Shown here piece after piece: positions 28,152 to 62,999 of a stretch of 64,000 nucleotides of DNA. This DNA comes from Bugula neritina. Its lineage: Eukaryota > Animalia > Bryozoa. Position numbers and translations under genes: made by a program. Under the pieces are notes generated by a model, which was not told the origin of the DNA, did not search any database, and worked only from the letters and a program-made list of their open reading frames with translations. The stretch covers positions 13,464,698-13,528,697 of the forward strand of contig OZ037765.1 in the NCBI GenBank assembly GCA_964035545.1, given 5' to 3'. Position 1 is the stretch's first letter, and every line of letters starts with the position of its first letter.

Positions 28152-31100
28152 ATGAATGATAGCTCCATGGCTATGACAATGGTTAGTAAGACTAAAAGTA
28201 AAAACTAAAAGTAAATCAAAATTTATTTTGGGTTTTTAATTTACTTGCAGTTACTGTAAGTGTAAGTTCAAGTTGTCAGTGTTGCTATTAGATTTAGTAT
28301 TACTATTACTATTGGTTTTATTGTCAGTAATAATACTACTATTAGTATTAGTAATTAGTCATGCAGAAAATACAACTATGGTGCCACAACCAATACAATT
28401 GGAATTAAATTCAATATTAAATAATAAATTAGTTATTACTAATTATATTTTTATAATGCTATTAATTTTACCAATAGTAATACTTATGCTAATAGTAAAT
28501 ATAATAGCTTGTAAGTAATGAAAATATTGATAATTAGTATTATTCTGTAGTGTATGGGTATGTCATTTTCAATTTGCTTTGCTAAATTAGTATTACTATT
28601 ACTATTACTATAACTCTTAGACTTAGTAATACTATAACTAATAGTATTAGAATATAATTTTAATATTTGATATTGGTTTTGAAATATAAATATTACTATT
28701 GTCTACTACTAATGGTGTCATCCCAGATAGACGCTTCCCAGTTAGACGCTAGGCTAAATTTCCCACTTGGAGGCTTCTCAGTTAGACGTTAGTTATATGT
28801 TTTAGTACAATATAATTATATGTATGTTATGTATTTTATGTACAATTTATTTGAATATTATTGAAATATATGTATATTTAAATAAATTTGAATCAGCTGT
28901 TTGCTATTTAGCACATAAATTCCTTTGACATGCATTAACTTATTAATTTTGCATTTTGTTATTTGAAAAAATAATAGTTCAATAAGAAGTATTCATTAAA
29001 GATAATGACTATTCTTAATGTATTCCTGTTTGTTGTCTCACACAAATTTATGAAAATTGGAATAATATTATTCCAGATAATTCATATTAACTATTATTTC
29101 ATGTTTAGCAATCAATGCAGCAACTATAAATTCATATATAGGTATATTACTGTATATATCGCACCAGAACAAAGAATAGCGTCTAAATGGGAAAAGTCCA
29201 AGTGGACAGCGTCTAACTGGGAAGCATCTATCTGGGATGAAACCATACTAATAGACTAACTTTAAGTATTCGTTTAAATTATACTATTAGCAACTTTACT
29301 ATCACCAGCCCTAGGAGTAGGACTGTTACTATACTATTAGTTTTAAGAAGGTTACTATTACCATGTGTTTAGAGCTTTAGTATTTGAAATTAATATTGTG
29401 TTCCATTTACTTGTAAAAGTATTCTATGTATGTGCTGTAGACAACAACCAAGTTGGCCATCACTTTTGGAGTTCTTGCTGTTGGTTCATTAGTTGTGATA
29501 GTTTTAAAAAAACTCATCAACAGGAAACCACCCAAAACTTTGCTTGATCCTAACGTTAAAGTACAATTGAAACTCATTGAAAAAGAGGTAAGGCTTAAAA
29601 ATTAAAGATATTTTCCTCAATATTGTTTCTCATCTATTACATGTTTATTAGGTTTCCTATTGTTACCGGGATTTTTTTGTGATCAATTTTATAACAAAAT
29701 TCATACAATAATTGTTATCTATTTAAAATCATTACTATTGAATAAATTTTTATATAAGGTAATATTTCGATTTGTTTAGTATGTAATTGAATATATATAT
29801 AATCATGAACGGAGTAACACCTAGTTTTAGTTTAATAGAATTTTTGAAGGGGTTGTATGCTTAGCCAAATTTTAAGAATTTAGGTAGACGCATTAGTAAG
29901 CCGAAATAATTTTATCGCAGTAATAAGCTCTTTATATACTGCTCACATTTGCTAACAAAACTTGATAGTTTTTATAGCAATAAAATGCATATCTTTAGGT
30001 GTGGGAAAATCAAGAATGCATCACTATAGTAGTTCACCTGCTAACAAGTAGTTAGAGCACTCATTGCATAGAAGTTATTTGCATAAGATAAATTGAGATG
30101 CTGGTATTTTAGCTTGCCACAACATTTGAAGCAGAAAAACTCAACATTGACAAATCATGTTTTGGTTAATTATCTTGTGTATGCTTTGAGTTGATGTGTG
30201 AATAGACTATGTTGGATGTTTGCTTTGATCTGATATTTAGTTAATGGTTTGCTGTGCACACATATGCATATATTTATTCTCAGTAATTTGTTTTTTGTAA
30301 AGCATGCTTATAATTTTTCTGTTCTGTCTTTAGGAAATCAGTCATGATACAAGAAGATTTAGGTTTGCTCTGCCTTCGCCTAACCACTGCTTTGGTCTGC
30401 CCATTGGTAATATTATTACATAATCTTCAACTGTTTTTTTACCCTTTGATAACGTTAACTCATGGTATTTAGTTTGTTTTTTGTATAGGACAATTCAAAA
30501 TCTAAATAGGATGCTTACAATGTAGGCATTCTCTTGTACTGTCAAAACTTGGAATTTTTGCATTGAAATAATATGTTGATTTGTCAATTATGCTGTCTTA
30601 GTGGGGGTGCCAACATGCAAAAATGGGCGGGTGGAGCACATCAATACTAACCTTTGTTGCTATATATCACTGCAAAGCCAACATTCTACTGATCTCAGAT
30701 CTGCAAGTACCTTTTTTGTATCTGGGGGGGTTCTCTCGTGAGAGGGGTGGATATACAGGGGTTTAGCATTTTTCAAGGGGGGACTATGGAACTCTAAATA
30801 TTTAATTTTCTGAGTAGTTTAAGTTTGACATTAAAAATATTTTCAAGGAATGTTGTACACATATGAAACTTTCTCTAACAAAAGTTTTGACCGAAAATAA
30901 AAAAGTGGGCGGAGCCTATAATATGACAAACTACTTTTTTGCATATACCGGATATTCTCTAAACTGCTACTTTTCTGTTCTAGCATTTAGAATGTTGATT
31001 TTTGGTATGAAAATACTCTATTGTGTTCTAATAATGCTCTCCGGTTTTCATTACATTCTGAACTATATAACATATTTCCCAACCATGACAAATAAAAAAC

Positions 31101-34100
31101 ATAAAACGGGAGTTATCTCCTCCGTTAAAAATTATTGCATTTCTACCCAATAATATTGCTCTTTGTTGATAGGAACAACATCAGCATGATAAAAATGTAT
31201 TCTTAGTGTATTTATATTAGCTTATTGACTTATTTTGAATAATTGATTACGATCAATACTATTAAGTATTAATATTCAATATTTACTGTATAAATTGAGT
31301 GTCAGCAATAATTAACAGACCACTAATATTCGATTTTTTTATCCATAAGTATAGTAACATAAAATATGGTTCATAAAAAAGTAATATTATGATTTCAGCA
31401 TCACAAGCAATTACTATGCTCTTTTATATCAGATATTGGTAGACATTTGTAATTGTATTTATTTATAAATAAGATAGTATTTAAAATTTTAATTTACAAT
31501 AGATCAAGCTTTATTACAAAGTTTTGTTATCTCTAGCGTTTATATACCAAATTAAATATATTATAATTCTTCATCAGAACTGCATTTGTTGCCATCATCA
31601 TCATAATCAGGCTCTTTGTTTGAAAAAGAAGACTGGCCACTTTTGTTGTTGCAATCGAAACATTCACATAAACCACAGCATTTCATCATCAGGCGCTTGC
31701 ATTTGCATGCTTTACTCTTACAGCCTGCTTTTTTGCATTTACATGCTGTTAAAATCACATCTGCGTTGCTTTCAAAATCATATTTTATTGGAGTCAAGTT
31801 AGTATCCCAACCATGGTCAAAAATTGGCTGGTGAAGTAAAATAGGTGTAAAAGCAAGTTGCCAAAGTATAACTTGATAATTGGCTCGTTTCACGTGATAT
31901 TCTAGGGAATTCCTACTAGGTGGTAGCTGTGCTTCACTGGAGACATTTTTTAAAGCCAATATTTTATATCTTGCTTCAGTGATATCATCATAGGCACCAT
32001 ATAGGTTGGAGACAAATCATTCACACTCTAAGTATGTTTCTTCTGATACTGGGGACCAATCATTAGAACCTAAAGACAGATTATAGCTTTCCTTTTCAAG
32101 TACCTCCAAAGCACGCTTTTTAGATATTCGGAAGATAAAACTTACTGAGTCACAACCTGTAAGTGCATGGAGTGATAATAGATTCTTGAGAACTTTTTGT
32201 AGATTTTTTTGGCTGATTCAAAAAGAGATATATATCTTCTGTGACTCCCCATTCCAACGAAGATTACTACATCTTTATTAGCCTGCTCAGTTAAAACATT
32301 ACTAAGATGATGTTAAGCGCAATAATAGCAACATCGGTATCTACTGATCTTATTACTACCAAATCGTAATCACTCAGTGCATCAGCTGCATGAAGGATTA
32401 ATCTCGTGTCTGCTTCATCATGATTGGATTTCAATTTGTTACAATTTTAACGATAATGGTTTTGCAGAACACAGACTTCTTTGGCGCTACACACTAAAGA
32501 TGTACCAGCTGGAATTTTCTCAATATGTCTACTCCATGCACCTTCACTATGTAATCTACCAACTCATTTTTGTTGTGAATATTGCTCAGAAAAGCACTCC
32601 AGTTTTTAGGAACAGGCAGGTTGTTATGAATAATGGAAATAGATCACATCTATTGGGCACCCCGTCTAATACGCTCTTGTGCTTTAATTGATGTTTCAGA
32701 ATACACGTCAAACACTACATCAACCCTTGTATATCCTTTGCCACATTCAAGAAATATTTCCAACATCTTCAGAGCATAGCTATAAAAAGTGCCTGATGTT
32801 TTTGTCGAGTGAAGTATGCACATACCATCAATAATGATCGATTTGTTGGTGGACAGTTGACTATCATCATTGGAGACCCTGTTTCCAAGATATTTCTGTT
32901 CCAAAATATGCATTAGTTGCAATTTGCATGTTTTTCTCATCTGTCTGTTTTCAGTAAATAGAGCAAGAGGAATGGGTCCAATTTCTTTCTCTAGAACTGT
33001 ATGCAAATCTTTGGCACTTTTGGCACTTATGAGAAGTTTAGCAAATGATATTTTAGGAACATTTGGTTTAATGGCCGGTTGAAGTGATTTAGCCACAAAG
33101 TCAAAGGAAGGGATTTTAAGCCGGTGAATAGCAGTGTAAAATGGTTTTATTGTATTCAAAAGTCTATCTTGAAAAAACTTTTGAGCCATTTCTCCTCCCT
33201 GAGCCATAGCAGTCATTATTGACAAGAAGGTCTTCGCATCGGGACTTACTCCAGTAGCAATATTAATCAGTTCAGTTGAAGTATTGCTAAACAACTTAAC
33301 ATCAAACTGCTGCAATGTAAAAAGAATTGCTTGTGTATCAATCTCATCCGTCATAGTTGTAATGATTGTGTCTTCCTTGTGTAGTGTTGATGACTGTGAG
33401 GCTATTTGGCAAAAATCCTTTTGCAAAGAAAGCAGTTGGGCTCTGATATGACTAGTTAAGAACCATTTTGTCCGAGCTTCTTCATGGTTGCTAATGCCAA
33501 TAATGCCTCCAGATGTTTTACTGCCTCGATTCAAAGTTTGCTCCAAGACCTGATCTGGAGCCCCATACCTGCAATTTTTTTTCCTGTCCTGTTTACGGTG
33601 AATGAACCCTTTGCAAACATTCCATAAACTTCTGGAGTAGATTCAGGCAAATTTAGCATATCAATAAGGTATATAGGCAGCCACCTTAAGTAGTTTGTGC
33701 GATCATACGCAAAAAAATACTGGTAACATTGCCTGCATACTGTCCAAATAAAATTGCCAGTTGCCAGTACGCTCAGCTCAAATAAATCCCAACATGGCTT
33801 CTACTGCATGAAGGTAGGAATTCCAGAACATTGAAAGGTTAGATTTTAATTTAGTATCAGAATCAAACTTTTTTATAGCAGTAGCAACTTTATCTGCAAC
33901 AGTGGTCCATTCACGCAAGTTATCATCAATAGAAATACGTATGATGAGACTCTAATGGGTCAAACTGATCATTTTATTGAAGCCATTCCGAAAGAGATTT
34001 TAGTTTCTGCCTTGATATTGCCTCATACAAAATCTTGTGTGCCCGTACACTTCTGTTATAATGCTTACCACATAGCACCTGTTTCACTGTAACTTCAGAA

Positions 34101-37100
34101 TATATATCACTGTGTACAAGAACTTGGGCTAGGCCGCTTGATTTTACCATTTTGCCAAGTGCTGCCATGTAATTCATCAAGATATGAAAACCGCCCATTC
34201 GAATTATTGTGTTTGAAAATTCAGTTGGTTTGTTCCATTGAATCTCTTTGGCAATCTTGTAGATAGCTTGGTCAAATGTAATTACTGAATGTTTCTGATT
34301 TAAAACTTTCATAGTTTTTTTTAGCTGCAGAAGGATTGTATAAATTGTTGATGGATCTGTTGATGGTGCATTAATCATTGGGCAATACCCAATGACTGAT
34401 CTTTTATTATCTTCTGTGGCAACCAAATTTCTTACATTAAAGCTACTCCAGCTGGGGCAGTTATGTGTAGAAGGACTTATATCCAATTGAAATAGTTTGA
34501 TTGGGGCAAGTCTTGCCAATAGCCATGCTGTATTTAGATTACATGAATCCTCAAGTGACTTTTTCATATTCAGCAATGTCTCTTGACTAAGTTTTGTGAT
34601 AAAATATGATTTTGAAAGCAACGCAGATGTGATTTTAACAGCATGTAAATGCAAAAAAGCAGGCTGTAAGAGTAAAGCATGCAAATGCAAGCGCCTGATG
34701 ATGAAATGCTGTGGTTTATGTGAATGTTTCGATTGCAACAACAAAAGTGGCCAGTCTTCTTTTTCAAACAAAGAGCCTGATTATGATGATGATGGCAACA
34801 AACGCAGTTCTGATGAAGAATTATAATATATTTAATTTGGTATATAAACGCTAGAGATAACAAAACTTTGTAATAAAGCTTGATCTATTGTAAATTAAAA
34901 TTTTAAATACTATCTTATTTATAAATAAATACAATTACAAATGTCTACCAATATCTGATATAAAAGAGCATAGTAATTGCTTGTGATGCTGAAATCATAA
35001 TATTACTTATACAGTAAATATTGAATATTAATACTTAATAGTATTGATCGTAATCAATTATTCAAAATAAGTCAATAAGCTAATATAAATACACTAAGAA
35101 TACATTTTTATCATGCTGATGTTGTTCCTATCAACAAAGAGCAATATTATTGGGTAGAAATGCAATAATTTTTAACGGAGGAGATAACTCCCGTTTTATG
35201 TTTTTTATTTGTCATGGTTGGGAAATATGTTATATAGTTCAGAATGTAATGAAAACCGGAGAGCATTATTAGAACACAATAGAGTATTTTCATACCAAAA
35301 ATCAACATTCTAAATGCTAGAACAGAAAAGTAGCAGTTTAGAGAATATCCGGTATATGCAAAAAAGTAGTTTGTCATATTATAGGCTCCGCCCACTTTTT
35401 TATTTTCGGTCAAAACTTTTGTTAGAGAAAGTTTCATATGTGTACAACATTCCTTGAAAATATTTTTAATGTCAAACTTAAACTACTCAGAAAATTAAAT
35501 ATTTAGAGTTCCATAGTCCCCCCTTGAAAAATGCTGAACCCCTGTATATCCACCCCTCTCACGAGAGAACCCCCCCAGATACAAAAAAGGTACTTGCAGA
35601 TCTGAGATCAGTAGAATGTTGGCTTTGCAGTGATATATAGCAACAAAGGTTAGTATTGATGTGCTCCACCCGCCCATTTTTGCATGTTGGCACCCCCACT
35701 ATCTGTGTCTAATGATGGATAAATGTTTATGGAACTTTAGGCACTCATATATATATGAGCTCACTGGTTGGCAACAAGCTCGTAGTGAGACCCTATACTC
35801 CAGTTTCTAGTGATGATGATTTAGGCTATGTGGACTTTATCATTAAGGTAAACGGACACCAACATTCGACAATAATATATAATATTTTCCAAGGCGTAGA
35901 GTACAATGATTCTTTAGTACCTTTATTTACCTAAATTTCAAATAAAACTCCGAAGTCAACAATCATCTGATCATTGCATAAATATGTTCATTACTGATAT
36001 AGGTAATGTTAATTTAAAATACCAAAGTTCATTACTGAAATGTATCATTACTAATATCAATATATAGAGTAGTGCAATCTCTGAAATACTGTGTTGTGAA
36101 ATAAATAGTCAATAGTATTGTGTCTGTTAGTTACCTATAAAGTTTTATATGTTCACATTTTACATATGTAAAGGTTGAATCAAATTACTCAGAAAAAATT
36201 ATTTGAAAATCCTTTTCTTTGCTAGCAATATTTTTTCAGCCTATGTGGTGGATAAGTAGATATCAGCTGTACATCTCGTGACATATCTCCTTTTCACTCA
36301 CTCAGCGAGTCACAGATATTGAATGTAAAGTTATTGTTCGTAGTCCAATGGCATATTTTCAATTGTTTATATGCTGTAGGTTTACTTCAAAAATGTTCAC
36401 CCTAAATTTCCCGAAGGTGGGAAAATGTCCCAGTATTTGAATGACATGGCTATAGGAGACTTCATGGACATGAGGGGTCCCAGTGGACTCTGCACATATG
36501 AGGGTAAAGGGCTGTTTGCAATCAAGCCTGACAAGAAAAGCCAGCCAGCTATGAGACAAGTGAAGAAAGTGGGAATGATTGCTGGGGGAACTGGTAAGTT
36601 TCCAGCTTATAAAATATTATATATGTTGTATGTTATGTTAGTTACTGCTGACAGCAAAGACTGCACAATTCAGTTTAGTAGCAATTATATATGTGTTTAC
36701 ACGGCCATGTTGTTTCATGTGGTGTGTGAGAGATAAGAACTAACCCCTGGAGTTCTGTTCAGGTATGTATAACATGAGATGCTTCACTAAAGTACTGCCA
36801 AAAAATTTTGTATGGGTTAATAGTCGCCATCCCTATGAGGACCCCTGATGTAAAGGGTTTTTGTAAGCAGGCTAAGGATGTTTTCACTATTGCGGCAAAG
36901 GTTCAATCGTAACTGAATGCCCTTCCTAACGTCAACAATGGCCTTTACTGGGGATCGAACCATTGACTTAATGTTTACTAGCTCGGTGCTTTAACCCCTA
37001 GACAACGGCTGCTCCCCAAACTAGTCCCTAAATAGACCATGTAAAACTCAGCCAATCAGCGAAGTGTACCAGGTCAATGTCTTACCATTGTAACTGATAT

Positions 37101-40100
37101 ATAATTCTGCAAGTTCAATTGCAAAATGCATGCTTCTAGAAGCTAGTTGTGCAACTTTTTTTTCATGCATTATTTAATTTAAAATCTTAAATTGATGACT
37201 CTTGAAATGATTTTTTAAAATGTCTAAATTAAGGGTTTATAAAATGCTATTAAAAATTGCATGTCTAGAAAAATGACCTGGTACACTTTTGCAACTTAAG
37301 GCCAATTATTACATAACTGCCAGCTTAGTAGTTATTTGTTGTTGCAGCTTGAATGGGTTATTGTTTAGCATTGGAAGCTTGCAGTAAACATCTGTGAATT
37401 TGGTACATGACTTTGATTGGCTGGTTTTTGAATGGCCCTTTAGTATATGCATCTGGATGGCTGGTTAGTGTAGACTCCGCCTACATCTAGCTAATGTACA
37501 GTAGCCAATCCACAGTAGTGTTACAAAATTTCTGTTTAACAAATGAAATATTCTGGTCATTTGTTTTGTACTTTACAATAGTAAATATTCTATTCAACTA
37601 GAATTTTATTGTATGTAAGCCATGGGAACTACCAAGAGGTTAAATCAACCACCCATGCTAGTAATATTGTAGCTCACAGTAATAGCAAGTCCACACCATA
37701 TAAATATACACATAAGCTATTATGTGCAGCTTATGAATGCTGAAATGACCCCATTTCTTACCTTCAATTTGAAAAAAATTGTATTACATATTCTGCCACT
37801 TCTGCACCAGGAACTTGTTTTCCTTTCAAATTTTGAAAATAGTAGGCAGTTTCTGCAGCAGTCAACTGCATCCACAATAAACAACGTAAGCTTTCAAATA
37901 AACTATAAATATATGAAATAGTAATGTGGAAACAATGTAATTTATTTATTGCTATGATGAAAAATTACAAGAATATTATATAAAAGCTAGATATAAATTT
38001 CTAGTGAAATGGCACAGGTAAAAAATAACACATTTTTACTTCAAATTCTAAATTTCATCAGTCACCAATAGTGGCTGTAGATTACAGAGAGCACAGCAAA
38101 CTATCATAATCTTGTCTAATAGAGGTGCCAACACCAAGTTCACACCTCCAGGACCATTTGAAATATTGAACTCCTTTATTCTTTTGATTGCTCTTTCCAC
38201 ATGGATTCGAAGGTTAGCAATCAACTTTGTTTGCAGTAACTGCATTTTAGTCATTTGCAAATGGCCTCTTTTCCCAGGTGGTATGGCTAACTTAGCTCCA
38301 GCGCCTATAAGTTCTTTTTCAATAAGAAAGCCTCTATCTGCCATAACCACATCACCTGGGTTTATGAAGTCTAAGAACCCAGAGTCATTCACTACACACT
38401 TGTCTGAGGCTCTACCTCCCATTCCATGCGAAATAAAGCAGATAGTGCCCCTGGGTGTAATTGCAACCAAATAATTGATGGTTTTGGTCTTTTTATACTC
38501 ACTCCATGTTAAAGATTGAGCCAGCTTTGATTGAGGCTTGCAAATGAATATTTCTGTGCAGTCTATAATGCACCCAATGTTAGCATATTGGCTTTGAAAG
38601 CTCAGAGGGATGTTCAGCTTTTCTCTTGTTGGAAAAACTATTAGATTGTTTAGTTCTCTTGCTAAAATATCTAATGTGTCTTTGAAGGTTTTGCCTGCTA
38701 GCAATCTAGAGATATAAAAAAGGCCAGCAAGCAATTGAAACTGTAAACCTTGACGCAGCTTCATCAAAGCCAATAAAAGTTTATCTTGTCCTGTCAACTT
38801 TTTTCTGAGAGTGAGAACTTTCATCTTCGGACATATAAATCTAAATATAGTAAACAAAGAATGAAAATTAAATTATGATTCAAATTATAATGTATGTGCT
38901 AAATAAATTTTGTGCTTAGTTTGTATTCATTCAGCAGTTTATACCCTCTGGTAAGTAGCTTCAGTTATATTTTGCAAGAACTATGAAGTTCAAGAACTGC
39001 TAGTTAAAGGCTTGACCCAATATATCACCATCCAAACAGAATGTAATATGTGTCAACGTGTGTTATGTAATATTGTAACAGTACATAATAAGCTAGCTGT
39101 CTGAGTACATGCTTTGAATAGAGTCATGAGTTTAAACAAATACTGTTGACAAACAATTATTACTTCATTTTATAATTATACTATAACTAATTCAAACCCA
39201 TATTATTTCTAGAATAGCATTTAATAATGTTTGTGAATAAGTGAAACTAGTAACAAGTGTAAACCATTTTAGATTTAAACACTGAGTTAGTTTCAGCTAA
39301 AAATTAGATTAGGAGGCCACTTTTGATAAGCTTTAAAATAACCAAGGAAAATTTAAGTCAAAACAATTTACTTTTCCTGGAGAAAGTGAGTCAATTTTTC
39401 CACAAATAAAAGACTGCTGCTTGTTTAATAAAAACCCTAAACTAAATAAGTCAAAGCATACAGATGACCACTGTGGTATTTATGAATATCTTACATAAAA
39501 CAACATCTTTAATAAAAAATGTATGAATGATGCACTCACACTGCAACAAATTTAAATAAAATGACAGTTTTACTACACATCAAATTTAATAAATGTACAA
39601 ATTTTTTAGCATAGTGAGACTTGCATTGTTTATTTGTAATAAACCATAGTCTATCTTTGCAATAAGAAAATCATAATTTTTACCTTGCTAAAAAACAGTA
39701 TAGAGAACGTGTAGGTATTCCAGTATAGAATTTAGTTCGCTCATCTGTAGTGGTGAAAGTTTTAAAAACTTTTACTTTTTCAATAGTTGCTTTTTGTTTA
39801 AACGTGGAACTTTTTGAGCCTTTTCTTCCAACTTGTGATTTTCGTCTATCAATAGAATGTGCAGATCTTTTTTTCTGAGTAGTTGATGATTCTGGTAACT
39901 CAGTTACTTCTGATGAAGTCTGACTATGAGGATGGCTGCCAGATGAGTTCTGTTGCTCTATATCAGCTGACTCTGTTGAAGACGTTTTCTGTTCGATTCC
40001 TTCACATGTTTCATTAAAACCACTGTTTTTTTGTGTGTCTTACATTATATGCTTTAGTGCGTTGGTAACCCAAATGAAGGGTTGGAGTTGGATTTTGCTC

Positions 40101-42825
40101 AGTGGGCTGACCATCCTTATGATTATGATTATGATAGTCTGCTATGCTCTCTGTATTCTACAGCCACTATTGGTGATTGATGAAATTAAGAATTTGAAGT
40201 AAAAATGTGTTATTTTCACCTGTGCCATTTTACTAGAAATCTATATCTAGCTTTTATATAATATTCTTGTAATTTTTCATCATAGCAATGAATAAATTAC
40301 ATTGTTTCCACACTAATATTTCATATATTTATAGTTTATTTGAAAGCTTACGTTGTTTATTGTGGATGCAGTTGACTGCTGCAGAAACTGCCTACTATTT
40401 TCAAAATTTAAAAGGAAAACAAATTCTTGGTGCAGAAGTGACAGAATATGTAATACATTTTTTTCAAATCGAAAGTAAGAAATGGGGTCATTTCAGCATT
40501 CATAAGCTGCACATAATAGCTTATGTGTATATTTATATGGTATGGACTTGCTATTACTGCAAGCAACAATATTATTACCAGCATGGTAGTTCCCATGGCT
40601 TACATACAATAAAATTCTAGTTGAATAGAATATTTACTATTGTAAAGTACAAAACAAATGACCAGAATATTTCATTTGTTAAACAGAAATTTTGTAACAC
40701 TACTGTGGATTGGCTACTGTACATTAGCTAGATGTAGGCGGAGTCTACACTAACCAGCCATCCAGATGCATATACTAAAGGGCCATTCAAAAACCAGCCA
40801 ATCAAAGTCATGTACCAAATTCACAGATGTTTACTGCAAGCTTCCAATGCTAAACAATAACCCATTCAAGCTGCAACAACAAATAACTACTAAGCTGGCA
40901 GTTATGTAATAATTGGCCTTAAGTTGCAAAAGTGTACCAGGTCATTTTTCTAGACATGCAATTTTTAATAGCATTTTATAAACCCTTAATTTAGACATTT
41001 TAAAAATCATTTCAAGAGTCATCAATTTAAGATTTTAAATTAAATAATGCATAAAAAAAAAGTTGCACAACTAGCTTCTAGAAGCATGCATTTTGCAATT
41101 GAACTTGCAGAATTATATATCAGTTACAATGGTAAGACATTGACCTGGTACACTTCGCTGATTGGCTGAGTTTTACATGGTCTATTGCTGCGAAACTGGT
41201 TTTGTAATTTGGGAGCTCATATATTCAGTTTGCATTCTGCCATTTGAGGTAATGTGTAAAATGCATGTTGATTGTAATTTTCATTTCTTGAAAACATCAT
41301 TATATTTAATTTGAGAATTTTTGCACCTTTTTTAACATAAAAGTTAGGTTTTCATATTTTGGTGCAATCAGCTAGCAGCATTCAGTTTATATTACGTGAT
41401 GTGCTATCAGCTTATTTCTGGTTCTCCAGGTATAACCCCAATGCTGCAGTTGATCAAGGATGTCCTTAAGCGCCCTGAAGACAAAACTAAACTTAGCCTA
41501 ATTTTTGCTAATCAGGTAAGAAATTTTTAAACGTTCTAAATTTAAAATGTTTTAGCAGACATCAGGTTTCTCTAATACATTAACTGTAACTCAAACGAGC
41601 TCTGCAGAATTTAAAACTTTGATATGTTATAAAAAATTAGATTTCTGTTTTTTCCATAGCTGTGGATAAAGGTATGTCTAATATTTTTAGACTGAGGAAG
41701 ACATTTTGCTACGGGATGAATTGGAAGGCTTGGCTGAAACTCACAAAGACCGCTTTACCCTCCACTATACTTTGGATCGTCCGAAAGAAGGTAGTTGGGC
41801 ACTGCCTGCATGTACTTGTTCGTGTATATTATTTTGGCAGTTTCAATAATTTTAGCGTTGATATTAATTGGGTCCTTTTTCAGTTTATGCTGAATCTATT
41901 ATTTATACGCAGTATAAGATCAAAGACTGCCATAACATTATGCAGGCTGATGATAGATTGTGCTATAATTGTTAAGTATTGGCTAAGTCAGGGTTTGACT
42001 TTAATGTGTTTGTTGTAATACATATATTTTGCTACTGAACGGTAATTCATTCATTATATCGGTGGTTTATTTTTGCTACTCCGCTAATTGTCTAATTCCT
42101 TATATTTTGTATACATTGAAAGAAGGTAGTTGGGCACTGCATGCATGTACTTGATCGTGTATATTATTTTGGCAGTTTCAATAATTTTAGCATTGATATT
42201 AATTGGGTTCTTTTTCAGTTTATGCTGAATCTATTATTTATACGCAGTATAAGATCAAAGAATGCCATAACATTATGCAGGCTGATGATAGATTGTGCTA
42301 TAATTGTTGAGTATTGGCTAAGTCAGGGTTTCACTTTAGTGTGTTTGTTGTAATACATATATTTTGCTACTGAACGATATTTTCATTTATTATATCGGTG
42401 GTTTATTTTTGCTACTCCGCTAATTGTCTAATTCCTTATATTTTGTATACATTGATAGCATTATTTGATTTCATAGTAGTTTTCAACTTTTTATGTTGTT
42501 ATAGTTTTTTAAGGTAATAGAAAAATAGTTGATTATGACAAACCAGATAGTCCATTTTATTGCCTGTAGGAAGTTGGTGTGTACCATATAGTTGTAAAAC
42601 CAATCATACCTCTATGATTTCATTAGTTGAGTCTTCATTAATAATATTGCAGATTGGAAGTACAGTAAAGGCTTCATCAGTGCCGACATGATCAAAGACC
42701 ATTTACCTTCCCCAGCTGCTGACACACTCATCATAATGTGTGGACCTCCCCCCATGATCAATTTTGCGTGTAACCCTAACCTTGACAAGCTGGGTTACGC
42801 CGACCATCTCAGATTTGCCTATTGA
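28152..42825 (+). CDS. CYB5R3: NADH-cytochrome b5 reductase (CYB5R3-like), 8 coding exons, about 309 aa
   Basis: Exons 28152-28181 (least certain), 29441-29587, 30334-30406, 35741-35847, 36380-36593, 41430-41515, 41691-41790, 42653-42825 (930 nt, in frame). N-terminal membrane anchor, [23 protein letters not shown] (FAD), [35 protein letters not shown] (NADH), [14 protein letters not shown] at 43048. Confidence 0.93.
28714..29244. mobile_element. MITE with GG...CC termini and 15-bp subterminal units (Merlin/MULE-like)
   Basis: ggtgtcatcccagatagacgcttcccagttagacgct ... agcgtctaactgggaagcatctatctgggatgaaacc. Flanks ctactaat and atactaat (7/8 match). Confidence 0.75.
30599..35701 (-). mobile_element. 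Academ (AcademX-type) DNA transposon derivative, palindromic, in b5-reductase intron 3
   Basis: Termini TAGTGGGGGTGCC...GGCACCCCCACTA (YR..YR), 3-bp TSD TCT (30596-30598 and 35702-35704). Inverted arms 30599-31788 and 34599-35701. Internal coding remnants show transposase + XPG-like nuclease + Cys-rich finger. Confidence 0.85.
31561..34598 (-). pseudogene. Disrupted Academ transposase-XPG nuclease-Cys finger gene, 5'-truncated
   Basis: Transposase motifs [67 protein letters not shown]-like motifs [48 protein letters not shown] and C-terminal [23 protein letters not shown]. Several stops and frameshifts between the ORF fragments. Confidence 0.85.
36820..37017 (-). mobile_element. tRNA-derived SINE, copy D
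   Basis: Minus strand ggggagcagccgttgtctaggggttaaagc ... GGTTCGATCCCC (B box), core gttgacgttaggaagggcattcagttacg. Confidence 0.8.
37034..41183 (-). mobile_element. ISL2EU/PIF-Harbinger-type transposon derivative, palindromic, copy 1, in b5-reductase intron 5
   Basis: Termini AGACCATGTAAAACTCAGCC...GGCTGAGTTTTACATGGTCT; AT TSD within an aATt target. Arms 37034-38111 and 40127-41183. Confidence 0.88.
38048..40115 (-). pseudogene. THAP-tail + HTH + DDE_Tnp_4-type transposase, 5'-truncated, one intron
   Basis: Exon 39684-40115 ([17 protein letters not shown] = THAP C-terminal end; TKFYTGIPT), GT-AG intron 38841-39683, exon 38048-38840 ([31 protein letters not shown]). The frame is continuous after splicing, but the start codon and THAP zinc ligands are missing. 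Confidence 0.85.
41783..42453 (+). repeat. 335-bp tandem duplication covering the exon 7 donor site of the b5 reductase
   Basis: Units 41783-42117 and 42118-42453, both starting gaaagaagGTAGTTgggcactgc, with only scattered substitutions. Confidence 0.92.
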
Positions 42826-43251
42826 GTGTGTAGTCAGCAGATAAACATGTGAAACTTATTCACACTTATTCACACTTATTCACGAAACGATTTACCCTGC
42901 ATCAAAATGTAGGGTTGCTTGTGTTTGACTTGAACTTCTTGAATGACTGTAATGCATTTATTCTACAAAATCTTTAGTACTAATAGATTATTATGTCATT
43001 GTTATGTTATCATACTTGATTTTAAAATTTCAAATTGAAGCATACAAAATAAAATCATAGCCTTTTACAATTTGTAAGCTTCCATTATATTTTGGAGCAA
43101 ATCAGTGCACTTGTAGTACACAAATGCATTTGGGTAGCTATTTAAACATGAAGAAAATAAGGATACTAATTTTTATAAGAAAGTTTAATGCCTGCCCTGG
43201 AAGAAAGTGTAGGTCTTTATCGTTGGTTATTGGATTATCAATATAGCCAAT

Positions 43252-46200
43252 AGACCATGTAAAACTCAGCCAATCAGCGAAGTGTACCAGGTCAATGTCT
43301 TACCATTGTAACTGATATAAAATTCTGCAAGTTCAATTGCGAAATGCATGCTTTTAAAAGCTAGTTGTGCAACTTTTTTTTCATGCATTATTTAATTTCA
43401 TACCTTAAATTGATGACTCTTGAAATGAATTTTTAAAATGTCTAAATTAAGTGTTTATAAAATGCAATTGAAAATTTCATGTCTAGAAAAATGACCTGGT
43501 ACACTTTTGCAACTTAAGGCCAATTATTACATAACTGCCAGCTTAGTAGTTATTTGTTGTTGCAGCTTGAATGGGTTATTGTTTAGCATTGGAAGCTTGC
43601 AGTAAACATCTGTGAATTTGGTACATGACTTTGATTGGCTGGTTTTTGAATGGCCCTTTAGTATATGCATCTGGATGGCTAAGTAGTGTAGACTCCGCCT
43701 ACATCTAGCTAATGTACAGTAGCCAATCCACAGTAGTATTACAAAATTTCTGTTTAACAAATGAAATATTCTGGTCATTTGTCTTGTACTTTACAATAAT
43801 AAATATTCTATTCAACTAGAATTTTATTGTATGTGAGCCATGGGAATTACTAAGAGGTTAAATCAACCACCCATGCTAGTAATATTGTAGCTCGCAGTAA
43901 TAGCAAGTCCACACCATATAAATATACACATAAGCTATTATGTGCAGCTTATGAATGCTGAAATGACCCCATTTCTTACCTTCAATTTGAAAAAAATTGT
44001 ATTACATATTCTGCCACTTCTGCACCAGGAACTTGTTTTCCTTTTAAATTTTGAAAATAGTGGTCAGTTTCTGCAGCAGTCAACATTCACAATAAACAAC
44101 GTAAGCTTTCAAATAAACTATAAATATATGAAATATTAGTGTGGAAACAATGTAATTTATTCATTGCTATAATGAAAAATTATAAGAATATTATATAAAA
44201 GCTAGATATAGATTTCTAGTAAAATGGCACGGGTAAAAATAACACATTTTTACTTCAAATTCTAAATTTCATCAGTCACCAATGGTGGCTGTAGATTACA
44301 GAGAGCACAGCAAACTATCATAATCTTGTCTAATAGAGGTGCCAACACCAAGTTCACACTTCCAGGACCATTTAAAATATTGAACTCCTTTATTCCTTCG
44401 ATTGCTCTTTTGACATGGATTCGAAGGTTAGCAATCAACTTTGTTTGCAGTAACTGCATTTTAGTCATTTGCAAATGGCCTCTTTTCCCAGGTGGTATGG
44501 CCAACTTGGCTCCAGCGCCTATAAGTTCTTTTTCAATAAGAAAGCCTCTATCTGCCATAACCACATCACCTGAGTTTATGAAGTCTAAGAACCCAGAGTC
44601 ATTCACTACACACTTGTCTTAGGCTCTACCTCCCATTCCATGCGAAATAAAGCAAATAGTGCCCTTGGGTGTAATTGCAACCAAATAATTGATGGTGTTG
44701 GTCTTTTTATACTCACTCCATGTTAAAGATTGAGCCAGCTTTGATTGAGGCTTACAAATGAATATTTCTGTGCAGTCTATAATGCACCTAATGTTAGCAT
44801 ATTGGCTTTGAAAGCTCAGAGGAATGTTCAGCTTCTCTCTTGTTGGAAAAACTATTAGATTGTTTAGTTCTCTTGCTAAAATATCTAATGTGTCTTTGAA
44901 GGTTTTGCTTGCTAGCAATTTAGAGATATAAAAAAGGCCAGCAAGCATTTGAAACTGTAAGTCTTGACGCAGCTTCATCAAAGCCAATAAAAGTTTATCT
45001 TGTCCTGTTAACTTTTTTTCTGAAAGTGAGAACTTTCATCTTCGGACATATAAATCTAAATATAGTAAACAAAGAATGAAAATTAAATTATGATTCAAAT
45101 TATAATGTATGTGCTAAATAAATTTTGTGCTTAGTTTGTATTCATTCAGCAGTTTTTACCCTCTGGTAAGTAGCTTCAGTTATATTTTGCAAGAACTATG
45201 AAGTTCAAGAACTGCTAGTTGAAGCCTTGACCCAATATATCACCATCCAAACAGAATGTAATGTGTGTCAACATGTGTTACATAATACTGTAACAGTACA
45301 TAATAAGCTAGTTGTATAAATACATCCTTTGAATGAAGTCATGAGTTTAAACAAATACTGTGGACAAACAATTATTACTTCATTTTATAATTATACTATA
45401 ACTAATTCAAACCCATATTATTTCTAGAATAGCATTTAATAATGTTTGTGAATAAGTGAAACTAGTAACAAGTGTAAACCATTTTAGTTTTAAACACTGA
45501 CTTAGTTTCAACTAAAAATTAGATTAGGAGGCCACTTTTGATAAGCTTTAAAATAACCAAGGAAAATTTAAGCCAAAACAATTTACTTTTCCTGGAGAAA
45601 GTGAGTCAATTTGTCCACAAATAAAAGACTGCTGCTTGTTTAAATAAAACCCTAAACTAAATAAATCAAAGCATGCAGATGGCCACTGTGGTATTTATGA
45701 ATATCTTACATAAAACAACATCTTTAATAAGAAATGTATGAATGATACACTCATACTGCAACAAATTTAATTAAAATGACAGTTTTACTACACATCAAAT
45801 TTAATCAATGTAGAAATTTTAGCATAGTGAGACTTGCATTGTTTATTTGTAATAAACCATAGTTTATCTTTGCAATAAGAAAATCATAATTTTTACCTTG
45901 CTAAAAAATAGTATAGAGAACGTGTAGGAATTCCAGTATAGAATTTAGTTCGCTCATCTGTAGTGGTGAAAGTTTTAAAAACTTTTACTTTTTCAATAGT
46001 TGCTTTTTGTTTAAACGTGGAACTTTTTGAGCCTTTTCTTCCAACTTTTGATTTTCGTCTATCAATAGAATGTGCAGATCTTTTTTTCTGAGTAGTTGAT
46101 GTTTCTGGTAACTCAGTTACTTCTGATGAAGTCTGACTATGAGGATGGCTGTCAGATGAGTTCTGTTGCTCTATATCAGCTGACTCTGTTGAAGACGTTT

Positions 46201-47412
46201 TCTGTTCGCTTCTTTCACATGTTTCATTAAAACCACTGTTTTTTTTGTGCGTCTTACATTATATGCTTTAGTGCATTGGTAACCCAAATGAAGGGTTGGA
46301 GTTGGATTTTGCTCAGTGGGCTGACCATCCTTATGATTATGATAGTCTGCTGTGCTCTCTGTAATCTACAGCCACCATTGGTGACTGATGAAATTTAGAA
46401 TTTGAAGTAAAAATGTGTTATTTTTACCCGTGCCATTTTACTAGAAATCTATATCTAGCTTTAATTTATATAATATTCTTATAATTTTTCATTATAGCAA
46501 TGAATAAATTACATTGTTTCCACACTAATATTTCATATATTTATGGTTTATTTGAAAGCTTACGTTGTTTATTGTGAATGTTGACTGCTGCAGAAACTGA
46601 CCACTATTTTCAAAATTTAAAAGGAAAACAAGTTCCTGGTGCAGAAGTGGCAGAATATGTAATACAATTTTTTTCAAATTGAAGGTAAGAAATGGGGTCA
46701 TTTCAGCATTCATAAGCTGCACATAATAGCTTATGTGTATATTTATATGGTGTGGACTTGCTATTACTGCGAGCTACAATATTACTAGCATGGGTGGTTG
46801 ATTTAACCTCTTAGTAGTTCCCATGGCTCACATACAATAAAATTCTAGTTGAATAGAATATTTATTATTGTAAAGTACAAGACAAATGACCAGAATATTT
46901 CATTTGTTAAACAGAAATTTTGTAATACTACTGTGGATTGGCTACTGTACATTAGCTAGATGTAGGCGGAGTCTACACTACTTAGCCATCCAGATGCATA
47001 TACTAAAGGGCCATTCAAAAACCAGCCAATCAAAGTCATGTACCAAATTCACAGATGTTTACTGCAAGCTTCCAATGCTAAACAATAACCCATTCAAGCT
47101 GCAACAACAAATAACTACTAAGCTGGCAGTTATGTAATAATTGGCCTTAAGTTGCAAAAGTGTACCAGGTCATTTTTCTAGACATGAAATTTTCAATTGC
47201 ATTTTATAAACACTTAATTTAGACATTTTAAAAATTCATTTCAAGAGTCATCAATTTAAGGTATGAAATTAAATAATGCATGAAAAAAAAGTTGCACAAC
47301 TAGCTTTTAAAAGCATGCATTTCGCAATTGAACTTGCAGAATTTTATATCAGTTACAATGGTAAGACATTGACCTGGTACACTTCGCTGATTGGCTGAGT
47401 TTTACATGGTCT
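43252..47412 (-). mobile_element. ISL2EU/PIF-Harbinger-type transposon derivative, palindromic, copy 2
   Basis: Same termini and AT TSD in aATt. Arms 43252-44325 and 46335-47412. Same internal junction as copy 1. Confidence 0.88.
44262..46329 (-). pseudogene. Disrupted DDE_Tnp_4-type transposase of copy 2
   Basis: Collinear with copy 1, but with homopolymer frameshifts (about 45013 and 46240), a TAA at 44619 and the catalytic E changed to K (RIHVKRAI). Confidence 0.85.
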
Positions 47413-58339: not shown

Positions 58340-58478
58340 CTACAAATGTAAAGTAAATAAATTGTCACAATTGTGAATAATTGCAACTGAAAGAACAGGA
58401 TCAGATACAGGTGAAGAGAAGATTTATTGCAAATATTATTCTAAATTGATTAAAATAACTATCAATCTTGGAACTTGA

Positions 58479-58623
58479 TGTGTGATTGGTGCGTAAGAGT
58501 ACAACAACGTTGGATTGAGTCTAAGCTGATAATTATCGTGATTTATTTCAATTCTAGCTAGTAGGAAAATCCCCGAGCTCAACGAGTCTCGCGGTGAATA
58601 ATAGCGAGTCAAACAACACAACA
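58479..58623 (-). repeat. 3' LTR
   Basis: Identical to 62855-62999. AATAAA on the minus strand at 58542-58547. Confidence 0.95.
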
Positions 58624-62830: not shown

Positions 62831-62854
62831 TATTAGTTTTAACTGCTGCCACCA

Positions 62855-62999
62855 TGTGTGATTGGTGCGTAAGAGTACAACAACGTTGGATTGAGTCTAA
62901 GCTGATAATTATCGTGATTTATTTCAATTCTAGCTAGTAGGAAAATCCCCGAGCTCAACGAGTCTCGCGGTGAATAATAGCGAGTCAAACAACACAACA
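62855..62999 (-). repeat. 5' LTR
   Basis: Identical to 58479-58623; abuts the PBS. Confidence 0.95.

Follow-up and report, generated by a model that had tools for sequence, protein, structure and literature searches.

Double-ended palindromic derivatives of Academ and ISL2EU transposons in the genome of the bryozoan Bugula neritina

The analysed stretch of Bugula neritina contig OZ037765.1 (64,000 nucleotides, positions 13,464,698 to 13,528,697; hereafter the window) contains the exons of a host NADH-cytochrome b5 reductase, which were searched one by one rather than as a joined spliced model, and three palindromic DNA transposons (Table 1). The Academ element and the first of two ISL2EU elements (ISL1) are located in introns of the reductase gene, and the second (ISL2) lies approximately 425 bp past its stop codon. 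A preliminary description had reported inverted arms of ~1.1 kb in all three elements, and our coordinates and arm identities (99.8% for Academ, 95.7% for ISL1, and 99.4% for ISL2) agree with it; arms so long and so alike cannot be due to chance. One arm of each element comprises a native transposon end and reaches into the last transposase codons, entering the frame by 228 bp in Academ and by 64 bp in ISL2EU, and the other is a reverse copy joined into the interior of the same frame. The copied Academ arm in the window has an 85-bp deletion at 35007/35008 that is private to this copy. Target site duplications (TSDs) are kept in all three elements, also in agreement with the earlier account. 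Within the reductase gene, at 41783-42458, a 341-bp tandem duplication (96% identity) has copied the last codons of an exon and its donor site into the intron.

Table 1. Coordinates of the palindromic elements, the host gene, and the parent-type ISL2EU copy (window positions unless a contig is named)
Feature	Position	Strand	Remarks
Host NADH-cytochrome b5 reductase exons	30330..42827	+	
Academ (AcademX-type) double-right-end non-autonomous copy	30599..35701	-	5103 bp; family norm ~5190 bp
TSD TCT of Academ copy	30596..30598, again 35702-35704	+	
Native Academ TIR	30599..31125		at least 527 and less than ~700 bp; found at either end of full-length parents
Academ native right end (arm 1)	30599..31788		1190 bp; TIR, 3' UTR, last 75 codons with CXC Cys finger
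Academ frame remains, frameshifted	31561..34600	-	approximately residues 455-1462 of parent
Academ junction	34599..34600		2-nt microhomology AT common to arm and parent interior
Academ copied arm	34599..35701		stands in for ~2.6 kb of parent's left part
ISL1, ISL2EU double-end copy 1	37034..41183	-	AT TSD
ISL1 native end	37034..38111		terminus, 3' UTR, last 21 codons
ISL1 HTH_Tnp_4 + DDE_Tnp_4 exon	38048..38872	-	open over 274 codons
ISL1 first-exon remainder	39683..40126	-	THAP domain tail plus linker; no start codon, THAP largely gone
ISL1 copied arm	40127..41183		one additional 6-bp unit at junction
ISL2, ISL2EU double-end copy 2	43252..47412	-	AT TSD; DDE exon with stop codon
ISL2 native end (arm 1)	43252..44325		
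ISL2EU junction at THAP His-Phe codons	46333..46337		arm to 46335, 46334 from neither, parent from 46333
ISL2 copied arm	46335..47412		in place of THAP start, intergenic promoter region, YqaJ gene, and native far end
YqaJ upstream and divergent, in window ISL2EU family and 83% sister	C5:8898057-8903306		

Academ transposons encode a large frame with a DDE core, an XPG-like nuclease, and a C-terminal Cys finger, and the AcademX type has TAG..CTA termini and long terminal inverted repeats (TIRs). Such termini and long TIRs are present in the copies studied here, and comparison of 32 relatives revealed invariant D378 and D562, a near-invariant E803, acidic nuclease-like motifs, and a CXC finger. 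D378 is likely the first catalytic residue of the Academ transposase. Pfam and PDB searches of the protein gave no match naming Academ or XPG, and a SWIM search gave a single match. A search of the 216-Mb assembly retrieved 30 Academ loci, 23 of which contain the same junction as the window copy. The 3-bp TSDs match at 19 of the 21 two-ended loci, TSDs of 3-4 bp being described for Academ (PMC10045372). One complete double-end copy, L011 (C6:12674799-12679977), has unlike flanks (TCT and ATA) and is possibly a recombinant of two insertions or an inversion breakpoint.

Full-length Academ parents of 6.6 kb were found in four copies, three of them having a frame that stays open for 1462 aa or more, together with broken parent-type copies at two further loci. 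The junction falls near residue 455 of the parental protein, and the N-terminal third, including D378, is missing from the window copy. Word searches matched the arm sequence in the 5' ends of the parents at offsets 304 and 508 and gave no match at offset 698, and thus the native Academ TIR is 527 to ~700 bp long; in the double-end form it has been lengthened to 1190 bp. The interpretation of the arm as an inverted copy of the 3' end therefore holds for the part beyond the TIR, but roughly half of the arm is native TIR.

The frameshifts of the double-end Academ copies are shared and nested, with one present in 18 of 18 aligned copies, one in 16, and three in 14, and none of them was detected in the aligned interiors of the parents. 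This nesting indicates that inactive copies kept jumping serially. Double-end copies diverge by up to ~4% among themselves, compared to ~1% for the parents, so the parasitic lineage predates the common ancestor of the present parents.

ISL2EU (PHIS) elements are defined by an AT TSD in an A|AT|T site, a transposase with THAP, HTH, and DDE domains, and a second frame encoding a YqaJ exonuclease; their TIRs are 6-259 bp long and usually start with GG (PMC4482050). Both window copies have the AT TSD in this site and contain HTH_Tnp_4 and DDE_Tnp_4 domains, THAP was identified in the parent-type copy and in relatives, and YqaJ in the parent-type copy; the terminus in the window begins with AG, not GG. 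ISL1 and ISL2 are 95.5% identical from end to end and have different flanks. They share a junction whose word occurs at 64 places in the genome (24 with an altered or additional 6-bp unit), as counted from genome coordinates, which corroborates the earlier conclusion that the palindromic form itself was mobilised. Subfamilies of 3.5 and 3.7 kb, shorter but with the junction kept, are deletion products of the double-end form.

The ISL2EU junction interrupts THAP at the His-Phe codons, and the predicted uncut sequence was found in the genome. One uncut place (C5:8.897-8.904 Mb) is 95% identical to the family and has THAP, DDE, and YqaJ frames without stops in the matched parts, the YqaJ gene lying on the opposite strand 2.7 kb upstream. 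Four copies of a sister family (83% identity) have the same divergent layout. Placed by coordinates and profile matches, the ISL2EU parent is apparently a divergent two-gene element with one seemingly intact copy. Such a parent has gene tails at both of its ends, and its derivative has lost the entire YqaJ exonuclease gene along with the promoter region. The proposed replacement of the N-terminus by a 3'-end copy is supported, as is the loss of the transposase start, but understates the ISL2EU case, where a whole second gene disappeared as well. No YqaJ remnant was found in the ISL2EU arms, and we therefore rejected the idea that the arm carries the YqaJ promoter. In the window family YqaJ is at the opposite flank; in three relatives from other organisms (L034, L035, and L036), and also at C6:2.828 Mb and C5:13.011 Mb in this genome, YqaJ is downstream and convergent.

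Arm words matched the near end of the C5 parent at offsets 44 and 258, and a word search for them at its far end was negative; the native ISL2EU TIR is probably shorter than 68 bp, or else the far end of this copy has been lost. Contigs L031 and L032, from relatives, stop where the TIRs collapse and yielded no TIR length. Autonomous relatives that natively carry the arms, which the preliminary description had named as the contrary case, are thus not what we found: the Academ parents have no arm beyond ~700 bp, and the far end of the ISL2EU parent also lacks arm words, and natively palindromic autonomous elements were rejected as an explanation. A loose-end sequence from the reads, considered as the far end of the ISL2EU parent, was rejected since it matched a separate ~2.35-kb family. 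This family has at least 12 two-ended copies (for example, C3:4529003-4531340 and C6:1579838-1582179), matches the ISL2EU TIR for the first ~44 bp and no further, and has the same sequence at both ends; it could be a third long-armed derivative. At C3:9464059-9467188, two decayed DDE_Tnp_4 domains face each other 2.2 kb apart, perhaps as a double-left or tail-to-tail arrangement. The ISL2EU arms themselves contain an inverted, inward TIR-like motif ~360-400 bp from the terminus (window 43610-43660 and matching places), and in them TIR bases 29-43 recur in inverted form (15 bp) at offsets 241-255; their terminal 400 bp look like a small separate element.

If a palindrome arises once, later mutations are expected in a single arm only. 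In the Academ tree, built without L023, which duplicates L022, and without loci that are truncated or interrupted, the two arms of one copy pair as closest relatives in 12 of 18 copies. After removal of gap-adjacent columns, 39 copy-private substitutions were present in both arms and 69 in one, compared to ~0.5 double events expected by chance, and the median number of arm differences was 5 within a copy versus 21 between copies. Between ISL1 and ISL2, 26 substitutions are distributed copy-wise and none side-wise, with a single exception next to the junction. In ISL1, the outermost 600 bp appear freshly homogenised, and the inner part does not. The arms of a copy have thus been homogenised with each other. 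The sister pairs L003/L004 and L007/L008 retain side-specific differences, so the arms are not reset by jumping itself and conversion is episodic; a reset at every jump was rejected on this evidence. A crude model places conversion per site at ~280 times the substitution rate, as an order of magnitude only, since tracts are long and correlated. With conversion so far above the substitution rate, arm identity is unusable for dating such insertions, and arm-to-arm conversion in transposon inverted repeats can here be counted directly.

We consider it rather probable that the two families reflect two independent one-off rearrangements by break repair with a TIR template switch, followed by spread in trans and by conversion within elements. 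A break in the element, in the simplest case an excision gap, would be repaired by a strand that starts at one end, pairs through the TIR with the other end, copies ~1.1-1.2 kb inward, and rejoins the interior by microhomology. The product would have two right ends with perfect termini and no functional transposase, and the few autonomous copies would mobilise it in trans. The long arms of each copy would then exchange sequence episodically by intra-element gene conversion. Each family shows a single junction, and repeated independent origins at the same base were rejected. All copies observed have moved since the rearrangement, and the intact TSDs are therefore silent on the origin. A template-switch repair model has been proposed for Galileo (PMC3573991) and for the Mutator homomorphs (PMC10401008), and the junctions have repair-type signatures, namely the 2-nt microhomology in Academ and, in ISL2EU, a 1-base insertion or, in an alternative parse, 3-nt microhomology with slippage (a 6-bp duplication). 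Against a template switch, the short ISL2EU TIR (<68 bp) offers scant homology, and microhomology of 2-3 nt is equally expected from a deletion across an inverted dimer; the junctions cannot separate the two origins. The data establish the parents, the structure and single junction of each family, the spread after inactivation, and the homogenisation of the arms, whereas we infer the repair pathway, the mobilisation in trans by the parents identified here, and any benefit from symmetric ends.

Double-end copies outnumber parents by ~22-23 to 4 in Academ and by 64 to 1 in ISL2EU. Symmetric ends may aid synapsis, as has been suggested for mariners (PMC4161770). The native Academ ends already match over 500 bp, however, and thus release from selection together with drift may suffice for the success of the double-end form.

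The inverted-dimer origin, which we regard as a serious though rather unlikely alternative, supposes that a copy jumped beside or into an opposite-facing sibling, that the two outer right ends remained after an internal deletion, and that the resulting unit spread, with the later history unchanged. This model was given for Rpmar49 and Rpmar17 (PMC4678618), and alternative transposition yields inverted duplications in maize (10.1101/2020.01.07.897926). TIR homology is unneeded, which suits the short ISL2EU TIR, and at two sites (C2:28843948-28843990 and C3:15327515-15327557) termini of ISL2EU-family copies stand back to back with 4 bp between them, as sibling-adjacent insertions. On the other hand, two events are required, no longer-armed progenitor above the 5.19-kb (Academ) or 4.16-kb (ISL2EU) form was detected among the copies examined, and a dimer alone leaves unexplained why both arms stop near 1.1-1.2 kb.

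With either origin, the Academ and ISL2EU forms share the tested features of the end-replacement derivatives already described for mariner, Galileo, and Mutator: an arm extending beyond the native TIR, a common breakpoint in independent insertions, no coding capacity, and an autonomous partner (TSDs being checked at the Academ loci and the two window ISL2EU copies, and the ISL2EU partner by coordinates). A literature search, with most subscription papers and Repbase outside its range, found no report of double-end Academ or ISL2EU elements, and such derivatives are here extended to both families. In the Rhodnius prolixus mariner lineages Rpmar49 and Rpmar17, the 5' part was similarly replaced by an inverted 3' part including transposase sequence, and in Rpmar49 a single progenitor was amplified in trans to 13 copies; their arms are 221 bp, compared to 1.1-1.2 kb in other superfamilies here, where parents are still present and arm conversion, not analysed in Rhodnius, could be followed (PMC4678618). 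The rearranged Drosophila mariner MITEs Dromar7/11/28/36 also have one end replaced by the other and long TIRs, and are among the most successful non-autonomous lineages, but they are <1 kb and the 3' end was replaced by the 5' end in seven of seven cases (PMC4161770). The nearest match to the Academ case is provided by the Galileo 2RT copies of Drosophila mojavensis, in which a long native TIR was extended by neighbouring internal sequence to ~1.1-1.26 kb and repair from the other TIR was proposed; there, the spacer F1 (mostly) or F2 was recruited rather than coding sequence, and the copies whose TIRs are longest have no transposase region, whereas a dead frame of 2-2.8 kb persists here (PMC3573991). 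Maize Mutator homomorphs, such as element 10P, have left and right TIRs that are periodically made identical, with conversion from the other TIR proposed and one element showing identical arms over 1,100 bases; that conversion was inferred between TIR clades, whereas here it was counted copy by copy in one young family (PMC10401008). With the parents and dozens of copies sharing a single junction per family, this one genome offers an unusually clean natural data set. A consensus drawn from the majority of copies would lead annotators to treat the dead palindrome as the family itself, with TIRs given as 1.1 kb.

The Academ copy and ISL1 are inverted duplications inside reductase introns, an architecture similar to that of Mu killer and Ac killer, in which an inverted duplication with transposase sequence is positioned for read-through by a host transcript; siRNA and silencing have been demonstrated for those single loci, whereas the forms described here are mobile and multicopy (PMC3440606; 10.1101/2020.01.07.897926). 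It is conceivable, if doubtful, that double-end forms act as mobile 'killer' elements that are better substrates, that keep a near-perfect 1.1-kb stem by conversion, and whose intron copies restrain the parent through hairpin small RNAs. If true, this would make them a self-renewing, self-limiting parasite that arose twice in one animal genome.

The preliminary description had proposed a host-level route with a 3' bias, and a host repair bias by which TIR transposons from many superfamilies become double-3' palindromes with arms of similar length appears quite improbable to us. Two unrelated superfamilies are affected, with arms of 1190 and ~1080 bp that both stop just inside the frame, and in each family the dominant non-autonomous lineage is the double-end one. 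However, these are two families with one event each, both ISL2EU ends are gene tails, so that the match in polarity says little, and the native TIRs of the two families differ approximately tenfold in length. The distances from stop codon to terminus (962 and 1014 bp) are alike by chance, and arms reaching the frame must therefore be alike in length. Both polarities have also been published, in Rhodnius mariners (PMC4678618) and Drosophila mariners (PMC4161770). Among seven transposase profiles scanned, a survey of low power in which arms stopping short of the frame or domain are missed, the Cys-finger and ISL2EU C-terminus profiles recovered the window families as outward-pointing pairs and gave no other such pair among ~30 other Academ-type or other ISL2EU/Harbinger matches; none was found in the hAT (14 matches), THAP (33), piggyBac (14), and Tc1 (87) scans. 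No third family appeared in these scans, and a host-level 3' bias is not supported. The small contig C300 (9658-23818) gave identical inverted DDE_3 pairs with a high score, which are probably bacterial IS630-type elements of a symbiont or contaminant.

An assembly or polishing artefact as the source of the palindromes or of their within-copy identity is barely credible, and a chimera was rejected: long inverted repeats are hard to assemble, and a comparison of window positions 34450-40250 with four sequencing runs, all in the form of contigs, gave no contig bridging the Academ or ISL2EU junction among the matches listed, but the identical junctions at 23 and 64 loci lie on many contigs with distinct TSDs, the arms of some copies differ by up to 25 bases plus indels, sister copies keep side-specific variants, and collapse would draw arms to the family consensus rather than to the partner arm. 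A weak joint from 34548 to 34867, with 21 letters on one side, is compatible with a deleted version of the double-end Academ form. Sequencing runs of other studies contain both families at high depth. In two of these (X5 and X21), the common ISL2EU form skips 38642-38858 and departs from the window sequence after 39413, suggesting that other populations may carry a different derivative. Elsewhere in the window, a perfect 146-bp direct repeat (58478-58623 and 62854-62999, 4.4 kb apart) possibly represents the LTRs of a young retroelement.
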